Part shown: positions 4,426 through 9,430 of the stretch, piece after piece
Layout of the letters: each line of letters begins with the position of its first letter
Position numbering within the stretch: the stretch's first letter is position 1
NCBI GenBank assembly: GCA_001643675.2
Contig: LSRY02000020.1
Span: 124,001 to 188,000 of the forward strand
Direction of reading: 5' to 3'
Length of the DNA stretch: 64,000 nucleotides
Origin: Monocercomonoides exilis PA203
Taxonomy: Eukaryota; Protista; Preaxostyla
The notes under the pieces: model-generated
What the model was told of the DNA's origin: nothing
The model's database searches: none
Seen by the model: only the letters and a program-made list of their open reading frames with translations
Made by a program: the position numbers and the translations under genes

Positions 4426-4970
4426 TGGGAATTTATGTTGTGGATTTGATCATCTTGGCTTGGATTTTGATTTTGATTTTTGACATTTCTTGCTGTTAAC
4501 ACTTTCACTTCATGGTTTATTTTTGAAATGGATTTGCTTTTTATTTTATTGTGTATTTTTTTTCTTTTTCTCAAATTTCTTTTCTTTTCTTTTCTTTTCT
4601 TTTTGTTTAGTTTTAACAAAAAAACATTTTTTTTTATTTTTTAAAATTCAATTTGTGGATGAAAAAAATAAAATCAGTCTTTTTTAATGTGAAGTTGATT
4701 CGAGTTGTTCAACAATAAATTTTAAGAAACGCCCACAAATTAATTGAACAACAGTTACAAAATAAAAAATAAAAAATCATAAAAATATCCATCGGCGTTG
4801 ATGAATATTTGTTCATCAGATGAATTGCGTATTTGAAAAGTTTATTCAAATTAACTTCGGTAAAAACACGAAAGTTACTTTGTTAATTTGAATTCACTTT
4901 TCAAATGCACAATTCATCTGATGAACAAATATTCATTTCCATGCCTTTTTATTGGATATTTTGTTCTTCT

Positions 4971-5005
4971 CCTTTCCTTTCCTTTCCTTTCCTTTCCTTT
5001 CCTTT
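4971..5005. repeat. (CCTTT)7 microsatellite downstream of the La-FKBP-TPR gene
   Basis: Direct reading of tandem CCTTT units. Confidence 0.9.
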
Positions 5006-5080
5006 TCTTTTCTTTCCTTTCATCTTCGCTTAACAAGCACACACAACAACACACACAAGCCAACCTCCAAAGCAAATGAG

Positions 5081-7511
5081 CTATCTTCTTCTTTGGCTCA
5101 TCTGTGCTTTGAGTGTTTGGTAAGCGCGTATGAAAGAGATATCGTCTTGAACAGACTCAAACAGCCTCTTCAGTGTTTCCAAGTCGTTCATCGCAGACTC
5201 CAAATCTCCAACTGCCAGAAACATCTTGTGCCGCATAAAAAGACACTTCTTCTTCATCCTTCCTTCCGCTCCTTGAAGCTTAAGTGCCTCAGAACTCTCG
5301 TCAATGCCCTTCTTCGCATATTTCTGCTTGTTCTCTTTATTTTTTTCAATTTGAAGCTGAACTTGAGATATCTTCCATTCAATGTCTACTTCCTTATCGC
5401 TCCCCCACGCAGCATCATCGTCTTCTTTGCTGCTTCCTTCTCCTTTTTCTTTCGTTTCCTTCAATTTATTGAGTTCCTCTTTCATTTTCCTTGTTTTATC
5501 TTGCAGCTCTTTGATATTCGTGTCACATAGATCGATGCATTTGCAGCATCCAACAGCACAATTACTCATCAAAATAGACTGCGCTCGAGTGACCAGTTCT
5601 TCTGTCACCTGATAAAGCTGAGTACGCAGCGGAGGCTCCATTTGTGTGCCCGAAGCAGCAGCTGAAGAAGAAGAAGAAGAAGAAGAAGAAGAAGAAGACT
5701 TCTTTTTCTTTTTTGCATCATTTTCATATTCTTCGATCTCTCTCAGCACATCTGTTGGGAGTGTTGACTCGTCCACCCACGGAATGCCATCAGACTCCTC
5801 TTCCTGTTCCAAAACGATCGCCTTTTTCTCTGCGTCTCCATCGCAATCTTCCTCAACATCCATTCCTTCTGCTCTCCTCTTCTCCATCTTCTTTCTTCTG
5901 TTCTCTTGCCTCGACAGCTCGCGAAGATGCTTCGAATACTCTTTCCACTCTTTGCCACACCACATTCGCCACTCGCCCAGAATCTGCAGCGCACGATGAT
6001 AGCAATGCAACGCCTTCTGCGGTGCACATTTCAGCGGAAAGAATTCTATCTTGGTTTTTTTCATGCTTTGAGAAGAATAAGAATAAGAAGAAGAAGCAGA
6101 AGCAGAAGCAGAAGAAGGGGAAGTCGAAGATGATGCCAACTCAAGGGACGCTGATGAAATTACTTCTGGTTGAGGCGGGTTCATCCACATGTTGCCAGCT
6201 TCCTTCTCAATCCGCGCAAACACCAGAGCTTCTCTCAAATTGAAGGCACGAGGCACTGTTGAATTGGCAAATGTCGGAGTATCAATAACTTCTTCATTAT
6301 TGATGTCTTCGTCATCTTCTTCCTCTTCTTCAAGCTGCTCAATGTTCTTTTTCACTTCAGAATCGTCATCATCCAAAATAGCACCACTTTTTGACTTGTC
6401 ATTCTCGCTTGTTCTCCTTTCAGCTGACATTGCAGCCATCTTCCTCCTTTCTTTCTCCTCCATTCGCTCTTTTCTCCTCGCAGCAGCATCCCACCTGCTA
6501 ATGTCCCGCCCAGCATGCGGAATCCACCCGAGCAGTTCAATTCTGTAGCTCACCCATTTGCCTCTTGCTTCTTCCTTGCGCGTGATATCCACAATCTCCC
6601 TCCCAACATTTGGCGCACATGCAAACAGCGCAATTTCTCCGCGTTCCATCCCACGCACCAGCACACTCAGCAATTGTGTTCGAGGCTGCTGCTTCTTCTT
6701 CTCAGGCCCTCCAATCACAAAAACATGTGGGTCATTTTCATCCCTCACCAAAACCTGCCCGGTTGATGTGACAAAAGCTACAAAACGAACAGCAACTTCG
6801 CTGAACATGGTGGGATGGTTCGGATTTGACAAGCCACATGTAAACATTTCCTCTGTGAAAATATCTGACGTTTCAACTGTGTTAACTTCACGAAAATGAG
6901 AATTTGAAAAATTTCTTCCTTTTCGAATTACTCTCTTCAATATTGAATTATCATCAAAAAAGTTAACATAATGAGCTGGAAGAGCAAAATCATCTTTGCT
7001 GTAATTATCATCAATAGTTGCTATTTTAGGATCTTCTTTTATCCCCATTTCATCCATCAGCTCTTTTTCCTGGATTGTTTCCAATGTTGATTGATCAACG
7101 AATGGACCTGTATATTTAAGTTTCCTCTGAACTCTCTTGCAGGGAGTTTCTTCAACAACTAACGTTTCTGAATCTTTTAAAGTCTACAAAATATTTTATT
7201 TTTATTTTGAATAGTTTCATATAAAATTGGTATTCAATATTTATCATTAATAAATATATTTTAATATTGTTTTTTTCAAACTTCAAATACTATATCAGAA
7301 TTTGTTGTTAATGCACAAAGTTTAGGGAATGTCATCAATTTTGAAAGTGGAACCCATCCTTGTAATACGAAAACTTTATCAGCAAATATCAAAAGAAATT
7401 TAGCAAACCATCGTTGGATTCCATCACATCCTTTAAAAATTTGTCTTTTTTCAAGTTTTTGTCACAGAAATAATACTCGACTTGCCTCAAAATATCAATT
7501 CTTTGTTGCAT
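5081..7511 (-). CDS. La-motif + FKBP-like + TPR fusion protein (3 exons: 7511-7409, 7358-7282, 7183-5081)
   Basis: Spliced N-terminus MQQRIDILRQVEYYFCDKNLKKDKFLKDVMESNDGWVPLSKLMTFPKLCALTTNSDIVFETLKDSETLVVEE is a La motif. It is followed by an FKBP-like region (ILKRVIRKG..EVAVRF..FVIG..VRGMERGEIALFACAP) and TPR helices (KEAGN..ALHCYHRALQIL; ILMSNCA; KCLFMRHKMFLAVGDLESAMNDL). Both introns are GTTTG..AG and keep the frame. Confidence 0.85.
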
Positions 7512-8075
7512 AAAGTGACAAAATTTTTGAGATATATATTATTATAATATGGGTTTGATCTATCTTTGTCTTTGCAAAAAACAAAATTTGAAAGATTCCA
7601 AAAATTCGAATCCTAAATATTTTGCTCATGAAATCAGAAAGCTAATTAACAAATTTTCAAATTATTTACTATGCTCAAATGCAAAACAAGCATTTTGATG
7701 GAAACTGAAATAATTTGATCAAAATGGAAAAATTATGAAAACATTTCAAAAAATATCATTTTGATTTTTGGTTAAGTATTTTCATTTAGAAGTTTTTTTT
7801 CAAATTAAAAATAATAACTTATCTGGGACGAAATTTTTTGCTTAATCATTTTGTTCCATTCTACACATTTAATTAATTTTGAAATTTTTGAAAAATTTCC
7901 AATGTGTTTTTGATGTGAGAATGAAAGATTTCTCATGATAAGGTTGTGGAAAAAGTTTGGAACAAATTGTTGTTTTTTTCATAAATGAAAGAATTTTGCC
8001 CCATTTGATAATATTGATACATAATTTTTCTGTTAGAGTGGAGGTTTTATTTTTTTCTTTCTCAAAAGCGTTAGA

Positions 8076-9430
8076 ATGACAAAAGAAGCTGACCACAACG
8101 ATGCTGCAATAAGTGAAATAAATTCACAAGAGCTTCGTGAGACAGTATCACATGATGAAGAGGACCTTCCTGTTGTTGAAGAAATGAACTTTGAACAATC
8201 TTCACATAGAAATGAAGAGCAGGAAGAAAGCGAGCACAAAGAAACAACAGAGGATTCTCAAAAAATTAACGATTTTGATGAAGAATCACAGCAGCAATTA
8301 CATTTTGAAACGGAACAAGTTTCTGAAGATTATTCTCAGCAAAATTTTTCAACTATGAATGAGAAAGAAAATCAGTCGCAAACAAACCCTCATTCAGATC
8401 AATTAGATTATGAATATCAAAGCCAAAGAACATGCGATTCTCAACAAACATCAACACAAGAAGAGTCATCTCCTCAATTTGATCGATCTCAGTTGGAGAA
8501 AACTGAAAATGATTTGTCTTGCCATGCAGATCCTACAGCATCAAAAGGAGGAAAACGTAAGTCTCATCATCATTTACATCGAGATTCTTCTTCTTCTGGA
8601 GGAAATGAAAGAGAAAGTAGAAATACTTCATTTTACAATTCTCAAGAGCTCGAAGCAACGAATAGATCTCGTTCAAATTCTAAGTCTCGTTCTCGCTCAC
8701 GTTCTCGTTCTCGATCCAGAAAAAGGGATAGAATGGGGGCTACAAGAAATTTTCTTGACACCACAGATCCTTTGTATGATTTATTCTGTTTTTAATACAT
8801 ATTTTATATTTTAATGAAATTTTCCATGCATTTTAATTAATCTGGATATTCTTTTGTAGATTTGAGCATGTCATTGACAAATACTCTCGCTCACCAGGTC
8901 CAGTGTATGATACAGGCGTGGAGCAGGATAGACTTCTCCGGCGTTCAGGCACAACTCGCATTGGAAAAGAATCGCGAGAAAAGTTCTTCACTCTCCCGTC
9001 TTTAACGCCAGGCCCTGTGTATCAGCCAGACGACAGCAAAACATCCACCTGCCCAGCCTCGCCGCGTGCCACGATCGGAAGAGCGCCGAAGCGATCGGTG
9101 CTGGTGCTGGACACGGCAGGCCCTGGAGGCCCGCCAATATCTCTTCCTCCGCTCGAGGTCGACCACAAGCACAGCTTCAATGCGACAATTGGCAGAGAAC
9201 GAAGAGGCCTCGTTCGCGTCGAAGATACCCCTGGCCCGGGGGCTTATGGCTCATTTGCACGTTTGATTTTTGTTTACTCTTAACTCATCAATCATACTAT
9301 TTTTTTTTCTTATTTCTTTTCTTTAAACGTATTATTCATTTAATCTCCTCGAACAGCTCCAAAGCATTCGAGCAAAAGAGGAACTTTTAGCAGCCAGGAA
9401 AGAGGCTCTGGTAATTGGATTTTTAAATAA
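8076..9430 (+). CDS. PGP-repeat (SHIPPO-1/ODF3/STPG-like) probable ciliary microtubule-associated protein; 3 exons (8076-8773, 8860-9260, 9357-9430)
   Basis: Repeats SPGPVY, TPGPVY, AGPG and TPGPGAY are interleaved with ATIG/RIG motifs. The N-terminus is acidic with an RS dipeptide run. GTATG/GTTTG introns join the ORFs in frame. Confidence 0.7.

Follow-up and report, generated by a model that had tools for sequence, protein, structure and literature searches.

A La motif joined to a degenerate FKBP-like domain and a three-TPR domain in oxymonads: a candidate adaptor between RNA 3' ends and Hsp90/Hsp70

Can one polypeptide hold the 3' end of an RNA and at the same time dock on Hsp90 or Hsp70? 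The question is raised by a minus-strand locus at positions 7511-5081 of a 64,000-nucleotide stretch of the Monocercomonoides exilis PA203 genome (contig LSRY02000020.1, positions 124,001 to 188,000; this whole stretch is called the window). An earlier note, made from the letters of the window, had read the locus as a La motif fused to an FKBP-TPR immunophilin. We conclude with high confidence that the encoded protein has a La motif without an RRM, an inactive FKBP-like domain and a three-TPR domain of the EEVD-binding type, and that this architecture is conserved in oxymonads. That the protein acts as an adaptor, linking an RNA 3' end in the La pocket to Hsp90 or Hsp70 in the TPR groove, is a reading that depends on models and to which we give an even chance.

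Hsp90 and TPR immunophilins help to load small RNAs into Argonaute and PIWI proteins and to assemble other ribonucleoproteins (RNPs). In all cases known to us, contact between co-chaperone and RNA is made solely by a protein client, and chaperone-driven RNP assembly in other eukaryotes is not known to do without separate RNA-binding proteins and co-chaperones. A natural fusion of La with FKBP-TPR would be a direct handle on how RNAs pass to the chaperone machinery. Its source is an amitochondriate oxymonad lineage whose lineage-specific biology is poorly known.

A three-exon gene

The locus is a real three-exon gene that joins a La motif to an FKBP-like/TPR open reading frame (ORF). It starts with an ATG at 7511 and ends with a TAG stop at 5083-5081. 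Its parts, as read from the sequence, are the following:

7409..7511, minus strand: exon 1, ATG and N-terminal half of the La motif; 34 codons and the first base of a Gly codon; pocket residues Q, Y, Y, D and F
7359..7408, minus strand: intron 1, 50 nucleotides, GTTTGC..CAAG, phase 1 within the Gly codon that precedes a Trp
7282..7358, minus strand: exon 2, middle of the La motif (GWVPL...MTFPKL...LTT), sixth pocket residue F
7184..7281, minus strand: intron 2, 98 nucleotides, GTTTGA..TGTAG, phase 0
5081..7183, minus strand: exon 3, 700 codons and TAG; end of the La domain, linker, FKBP-like domain, charged linker and TPR domain

Both exon joins preserve the frame from the La motif into the long minus-strand ORF, and the predicted product has 34 + 1 + 25 + 700 = 760 residues. 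The 667-residue ORF of exon 3 is an entry with a TTG start in the ORF list. The two short GTTTG..AG introns that the earlier note had placed at 7408-7359 and 7281-7184 are upheld by the in-frame joins, by the La profile that spans the exons, and by their recurrence in relatives; the motifs that it quoted (RQVEYYF, KDKF, MTFP, KEAGN, SNCA and KCLFMR) are all present in the sequence.

The La exons could instead be a separate small gene or a decayed fragment, with an FKBP-TPR ORF that starts at an internal Met. Two observations would suit such an artefact: the junctions are not covered by RNA contigs, and exons 1 and 2 are more AT-rich than most of exon 3. Against it, a paralogue on contig C5 and a gene of the oxymonad Blattamonas nauphoetae share both introns in position and phase, which makes three genes of two genera, and the Blattamonas orthologue is annotated as a single protein. 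The La profile is continuous across the exons. The frame of exon 3 is open from immediately behind the TAG at the 3' splice site, and the 42 codons that come before its first in-frame ATG show conservation in the relatives. Retention of intron 1 leads to a stop within 8 codons (ORF 7389-7511), and a stand-alone La ORF would be a stump of 40 residues. We regard the artefact as very improbable.

Exact pieces of exon 3 were present in four RNA libraries of one study (5024-5252, 5715-6046 and 6211-6707). Transcription of exon 3 is likely, short of proof, DNA carry-over being possible in these libraries. None of the contigs from the four libraries held a splice junction, and none lay above 6729, which leaves a gap at 6729-7700.

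A third intron was considered within the Ser-rich insert of TPR1, where an in-frame GT (6163) and AG (6017) delimit 147 nucleotides whose removal would give a spacing like that of the paralogue. Introns of M. exilis have a GC content of 27.6% (PMC8767320). We kept 6017-6163 as coding because RNA contigs enter it from the 3' side as far as 6046 (29 nucleotides), no joint was reported there, and its GC content is far above that of introns. The insert is thus probably coding, and alternative splicing there is possible.

The La motif, the FKBP-like domain and the TPR domain

The Pfam La profile (PF05383) matched exon 1 alone with 42.1 bits (E 7.8e-11, profile positions 1-27 of 59), above the curated cut-off of 37.1 bits. 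Exon 2 matched with 17.3 bits at profile positions 31-54 of 59, so the same profile continues across intron 1. A six-frame La scan of the 82-Mb genome found only four La sites, this locus among them (E 1.2e-8). In a phmmer search of the PDB with exon 1, genuine La came first (Dictyostelium and human), followed by LARP7, LARP6 and LARP1. The pocket that binds UUU-3'OH consists of Q20, Y23, Y24, D33, F35 and F55 in human La numbering. The Q, Y, Y, D and F of exon 1 are identical to the human residues in the phmmer alignment, and the sixth residue, the F of MTFPKL in exon 2, was positioned by eye from the GWVPL anchor; six of six are then present.

The La domain would be completed by the start of exon 3:

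7118..7183, minus strand: C-terminal wing of the La domain, exon-3 residues 1-22, TLKDSETLVVEE..RVQRK, assigned by eye and by conservation in the family

By eye, the wing is collinear with the La-motif ends of the two other La genes of the genome, and its S5, P14 and R20 are invariant across the three family members. The first 40 residues of exon 3 had no match by phmmer in the PDB, nor by BLASTP against the two other La genes. One of these genes (L010, G000:C36) is genuine-La-like, with an intron within the La motif and the start of an RRM after it; the other (L009, G000:C29) is LARP-like, with an RRM directly after the La motif.

No RRM was matched in any exon at E up to 10 with Pfam, nor were DM15, PAM2/PBM or LSA/SUZ-C, the signatures of LARP1, LARP4 and LARP6, or any other LARP1 element. 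The stretch from the La motif to the FKBP-like domain is only about 60-80 residues long. La motifs without an adjoining RRM are reported to be functional in LARP1 and in Tetrahymena Mlp1 (PMC11259064, PMC9705548).

The remainder of exon 3 is divided as follows:

6518..6946, minus strand: FKBP-like domain, exon-3 residues ~80-222; support at the profile level, pocket degenerate
6254..6517, minus strand: charged, acidic, low-complexity linker, exon-3 residues ~223-310; from the translation and low predicted local distance difference test (pLDDT) values
5084..6253, minus strand: three-TPR domain and capping helix, exon-3 residues 311-700
TPR1, minus strand: exon-3 helices 313-334 and 387-409, split by a Ser-rich insert of 50 residues
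TPR2, minus strand: exon-3 helix A 519-548 and helix B ~626-635, split by a predicted coiled-coil hairpin of ~80 residues
TPR3, minus strand: exon-3 residues 642-674
capping helix, minus strand: exon-3 residues 682-699
6191..6205, minus strand: TPR1 clamp residues K327 and N331 (KEAGN), placed by motif from the sequence
5561..5563, minus strand: TPR2 clamp residue N541, aligned by hhalign with the invariant Asn of canonical proteins
5231..5248, minus strand: TPR3 clamp region K646-C-L-F-M650-R651, aligned by hhalign (KCLFMR with KAFFRR); the Lys is kept and the Arg position is Met

The evidence for the FKBP-like domain comes from profiles. The paralogue matched FKBP_C (PF00254) with 23.9 bits, above the cut-off of 21.1 bits, at profile positions 50-94. 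A profile built from the two paralogues and run against the PDB gave 12 matches, all of them FKBPs (best wheat FKBP73, E 0.002), which covered both halves of the domain. The three-member family aligned by hhalign over the whole FKBP domain with four canonical FKBP-TPR proteins of the same genome (E 3.7e-4, probability 36%). The residues needed for activity and FK506 binding are Y26, D37, W59, Y82 and F99 in FKBP12 numbering. In the present protein the canonical Trp, Asp and Tyr pocket columns hold other residues, and aromatic substitutes occur only at the Y26 and F99 columns; the alignment of the pocket columns is of modest confidence in that region. A conserved insertion of ~30 residues that is specific to the family follows the first strand. 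From its sequence, the domain is most likely FKBP-derived and inactive. The charged linker that follows it is absent or shorter in the relatives.

The C-terminal 390 residues were assigned from models and alignments. AlphaFold2 (AF2) run on an alignment of the three members gave pLDDT 64-92 for residues 520-700 and lower values in TPR1; the single-sequence run (pLDDT 43.8) was useless. An alignment of seven sequences, including canonical FKBP-TPR proteins, misaligned the TPRs and was kept out of the folding, also to avoid circularity. The model of residues 311-700 was superposed with VIA-align on known structures; rmsd is the root-mean-square deviation:

Cpr7: Z 13.3, 153 residues aligned, rmsd 2.5 Å
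PfFKBP35 TPR: Z 12.6, 146 residues aligned, rmsd 2.7 Å
FKBP38 with MEEVD: Z 12.2, 149 residues aligned, rmsd 4.0 Å
FKBP52: Z 11.7-11.8, 147-148 residues aligned, rmsd 2.6 Å

AIP/XAP2 followed with Z 11.2, and Sgt2, PP5 and CHIP also matched; overall, Z ranged from 13.3 to 10.3 with 120-153 residues aligned, values at the upper edge of the background that the common arrangement of helical repeats can give. Foldseek gave E ~5e-3 and probability ~1.0 to the TPR domains of PfFKBP35, AIP, PP5 and FKBP52. With hhalign, TPR2-TPR3 aligned with the canonical FKBP-TPR proteins (E 1.7e-4, probability 50%), SNCAVGCCK being paired with LNRALCCLK and KCLFMR with KAFFRR. The neighbours in ESM features were all FKBP_C+TPR families, FKBP6 and AIP included, and FKBP6/Shutdown was also among the nearest neighbours by Atlas structure. 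Taken together, the Z values, hhalign and the language-model neighbours suggest a three-TPR domain of the co-chaperone type with a cap. Two insertions, the Ser-rich 50-mer in TPR1 and the predicted coiled-coil hairpin in TPR2, are specific to this copy, whereas all three members share an invariant W..WCG.EW..Y motif that follows TPR1. Four of the five clamp residues are kept (K327, N331, N541 and K646), and R651, which is conserved, is the second Arg of the canonical RR pair.

Most of what the earlier note had said of the domains agrees with these results. It had proposed an N-terminal La motif, now found above the Pfam cut-off on exon 1 and continued on exon 2; counterparts for all six pocket residues, five of which were recovered by the tool alignment to human La and the second F by eye; and an FKBP-like domain in the place of an RRM. 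The degenerate pocket of that domain is borne out by the column comparison, next to the FKBP_C match of the paralogue, the PDB profile and hhalign for the domain itself. Its comparison with FKBP6/Shutdown holds in that the pocket is mostly replaced and FKBP6/Shutdown and AIP are among the nearest look-alikes in protein models, though there is no sequence orthology. The TPR helices agree with the AF2 superposition, Foldseek and hhalign. The two-carboxylate clamp needed a correction: K327, N331, N541 and K646 stand, and the Arg does not, KCLFMR having been read one register off, so that the clamp Arg is Met-650.

RNA ends, chaperone tails and the relatives

The proposed mechanism has three parts. 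The La motif would hold the 3' end of a single-stranded RNA, either oligo-U or oligo-A, whose 3'-OH is free. The TPR groove, in which four of five clamp residues remain, would bind the MEQVD at the end of Hsp90 or the IEEVD at the end of Hsp70. The dead FKBP domain may be a surface for a client or another protein contact, as in FKBP6/Shutdown or AIP. In this way the protein would bring an RNA or RNP to the Hsp70/Hsp90 machinery, there to be assembled or remodelled. Candidate RNA classes are RNA polymerase III (Pol III) transcripts, small RNAs for the Argonautes of this genome, or mRNA tails. The genome has at least four genes with a Piwi domain, which makes the small-RNA analogy of the earlier note possible; nothing points to a particular RNA class.

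The tails that the groove would have to accept were read from the genome. Its three cytosolic Hsp90 genes (L027, L028 and L029) all end in MEQVD, not in the usual MEEVD, and three Hsp70 genes (L031-L033) end in IEEVD. We modelled exon-3 residues 305-700 in complex with the last 40 residues of the genome's own Hsp90, in three runs and with three controls. The complex score was 0.62 (runs 0.65, 0.61 and 0.62), against 0.00 for the best of the three controls; the mark for this score is reached by 51 of 78 solved complexes and by 2 of 108 mismatched pairs. The runs agreed in at least 41% of the contacts, and the pLDDT of the partner was at least 41. In the model, the last residues of the tail contact N331, N541, K646 and M650: N331 touches the last two Hsp90-tail residues, N541 is the contact of lowest error, and K646 and M650 touch tail residues 741-742. 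K327 is not among the listed contacts. The docking of a chaperone tail in the TPR groove, which the earlier note had put forward for an MEEVD peptide, was thus reproduced in prediction with the MEQVD tail (0.62 versus 0.00). As a modelled result, it shows likeness of the groove, not binding.

The relatives bear on both ends of the proposed adaptor. A genome search with exon 3 found the paralogue at G000:C5:824805-826953 (L013 1305-3453, minus strand), with a La site just upstream. It has the identical order of La motif, FKBP-like domain and TPR domain, the same two intron positions and phases, and a more compact TPR region. BLASTP of the two exons 3 gave collinear matches of 5e-26 and 1e-17. 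The orthologue is KAK2964983.1 (BLNAU_284), a hypothetical protein of B. nauphoetae (phmmer of exon 3, E 6.9e-9). It is annotated as one protein of 745 residues, named in UniRef only as an HTH La-type domain protein, and has a La match at residues 16-70 (36.3 bits), followed by the same collinear regions. It was the sole match in an exhaustive phmmer search with exon 3 over 1.84 billion representative proteins, in which no sequence orthology to FKBP6 appeared. Nothing further came from word-index homologue searches, whether the query was exon 3, the family alignment or the La part of the orthologue; the first two were probably swamped by low-complexity words. The family alignment also had no match to a relative in a metagenome scan.

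The M. exilis paralogues are 34.6% identical to each other, and each is 27-28.5% identical to the Blattamonas protein. So far, three proteins in two oxymonads share the architecture and both intron positions, and the family is restricted to oxymonads. On sequence grounds, this fits a fusion older than the split of Monocercomonoides and Blattamonas, with a later duplication. The binding residues were kept to different degrees. The La pocket retains six of six residues in this copy, three of six in the paralogue and two of six in Blattamonas. Both M. exilis copies have four of the five clamp residues and the Blattamonas protein has none of the five; the clamp Arg position holds Met in this copy, Asn in the paralogue and His in Blattamonas. 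Three members that differ in the retention of La pocket and TPR clamp are a natural mutant series for testing the idea.

This divergence could also be read as that of a fast-evolving, lineage-specific and inactive FKBP-TPR scaffold, similar to FKBP6 or AIP, in which La would be a relic or a module for protein contact. The intact pocket would then be leftover ancestry, with no coupling of RNA to chaperones. The pocket counts of the two relatives point in this direction, as do the missing RRM partner, the pairwise identity of just 27-35% among the three members, and the long low-complexity insertions within TPR1 and TPR2. On the other side, every one of the six pocket residues of this copy agrees with the universal La consensus, and exon 1 alone scores above the Pfam cut-off. 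The two paralogues resemble each other more than they do the Blattamonas protein, and only this copy has the full pocket; this implies purifying selection here while the sister copies drifted, and argues for selection on RNA-end binding. In addition, RRM-less La motifs are reported to bind RNA ends in LARP1 and Mlp1 (PMC11259064, PMC9705548). We consider a scaffold of this kind unlikely, though it deserves to be kept in mind.

The other end of the adaptor may be the one that has changed. In that case the protein would be an RNA-binding La-motif protein, an RNP factor similar to the LARPs and not a co-chaperone, with a TPR domain retargeted from the Hsp90/Hsp70 tails to another partner. Consistent with this are the Met in place of the clamp Arg, the position of K327 outside the confident contacts of the complex model, and the loss of the clamp in Blattamonas. 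The family-specific W..WCG.EW..Y motif and the coiled-coil hairpin grafted on the TPR domain suggest other contacts, and TPR domains of the same fold bind non-EEVD peptides, such as AIP with Tomm20 (title of a PDB entry). Retargeting is harder to reconcile with the clamp, which keeps four of its five residues in either M. exilis copy, with the docking of the Hsp90 tail (0.62 versus 0.00, terminal residues on N331, N541 and K646), and with the closest structural matches, which are EEVD-binding TPR domains. We judge it improbable.

Several results weigh against the adaptor reading and parts of the domain assignment behind it. Among the profiles for La, FKBP_C and TPR by which HMMER was to recover the architecture, La matched; FKBP_C had no match in exon 3 of this copy and matched only in the paralogue, and none of the three members had a match to a TPR profile at E up to 10. 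TPR1 alone could not be aligned by hhalign with the canonical proteins (E 0.5). The overall pLDDT of the AF2 model is 47, poor in TPR1 and in the FKBP-like part; the latter is unreliable (pLDDT 20-35), its fold being supported by profiles only. The score of the complex may reflect memory of solved TPR-MEEVD complexes, and it is uncalibrated for peptides and disordered tails. The clamp Arg is M650, the Z values are at the edge of their background, and the RNA contigs leave the junctions uncovered. RRM1 of genuine La contributes to RNA binding and is absent from the present protein. The Blattamonas protein has lost the other four clamp residues as well as four of the six pocket residues, so the proposed mechanism is not a conserved property of the family.

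The adaptor reading is set out above with these points counted. A stronger form of it, in which the protein would be a sixth kind of La-motif protein, an RNA 3'-end reader hard-wired to an immunophilin module that docks on Hsp90/Hsp70 and so aims chaperone-driven RNP assembly by 3' ends, is possible and tentative. Its candidate targets would be Argonaute loading or the maturation of Pol III RNPs.

Other features were observed around the gene. An inverted repeat at 4801-4936 (55-nucleotide arms, 93% complementary, 26-nucleotide loop) lies ~145 nucleotides downstream of the stop, possibly in the 3' untranslated region. It was rejected as a mobile element, as it occurs just once in the genome. 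A (GGAAA)n pentanucleotide microsatellite (~4975-5010, in the minus-strand reading) separates this hairpin from the stop codon. The divergent upstream neighbour (8076-8795, plus strand) is an ORF of at least 239 residues, acidic and Ser-rich; close to its end it carries an (RS)n tract like those of SR-type RNA-processing proteins.

Comparison with known systems

The architecture appears to be a new one built from known domains, and is known so far from three genes in two oxymonads. The earlier note had said that it belonged to no described family. This stands in that no description was found, and it has to be amended in that the protein is not unique, given its paralogue and the Blattamonas orthologue. 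The literature, searched for La together with FKBP, TPR or immunophilin, yielded no fusion of this kind; the scope was the literature, not a domain-architecture query across eukaryotes, and independent fusions elsewhere are possible. Among the nearest large Atlas clusters, none had a La domain. A survey of La and LARP proteins (345 proteins in 135 species) mentions neither FKBP nor TPR and has an immunophilin module in no class (PMC7928011), and the present family adds to the superfamily an architecture that is absent from that survey.

FKBP6/Shutdown, a near neighbour by ESM features and Atlas structure, combines a single FKBP domain, its pocket degenerate, with a three-TPR domain behind it. 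These inactive FKBP-TPR co-chaperones of the piRNA pathway work with Hsp90 in loading small RNAs onto PIWI proteins. They are not known to have an RNA-binding domain of their own and reach RNA only through clients, whereas the present protein carries a La motif, and it adds insertions in FKBP, TPR1 and TPR2.

The large immunophilins (FKBP51/52, wheat FKBP73, PfFKBP35, FKBP38 and Cpr7/CYP40) and AIP/XAP2 share the order of an FKBP or cyclophilin domain followed by TPRs, with a TPR fold at Z 11-13. The FKBP profile matches the canonical proteins, and the TPR2 Asn and TPR3 Lys align with theirs. The canonical proteins pass Pfam FKBP_C and TPR and keep the K/N/N/K/R clamp and the pocket residues; the present protein fails both Pfam models, has Met at the clamp Arg, is without equivalents of the Trp, Asp and Tyr of the pocket, and has an N-terminal La motif. 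The same genome has at least four canonical genes with a single FKBP and TPRs (L015, L018, L022 and L025) with intact clamps, among 28 FKBP_C matches.

On the RNA side, the La motif is closest to genuine La in the PDB and has all six UUU-3'OH residues. Unlike genuine La, the protein is without RRM1, RRM2 and the basic tail, and the genome has a separate genuine-La-like gene (L010). LARP1 and Tetrahymena Mlp1 are similar in having a La motif that is not followed by a recognisable RRM and, as reported, are a precedent for RNA 3'-end binding (PMC11259064, PMC9705548). In contrast to LARP1, the present protein is without DM15 or any other LARP1 element and has an immunophilin module downstream.

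The only related case found in the literature is LARP6, bound in trans by FKBP3 (FKBP25). There, too, a La-motif protein and an FKBP act together, the binding of FKBP3 stabilising LARP6 (PMC4813270). The LARP6 system consists of two polypeptides, and its FKBP3 is an active nuclear protein without TPRs. The oxymonad protein, by contrast, combines La motif and FKBP-like domain in cis, in one chain that also includes a TPR domain.

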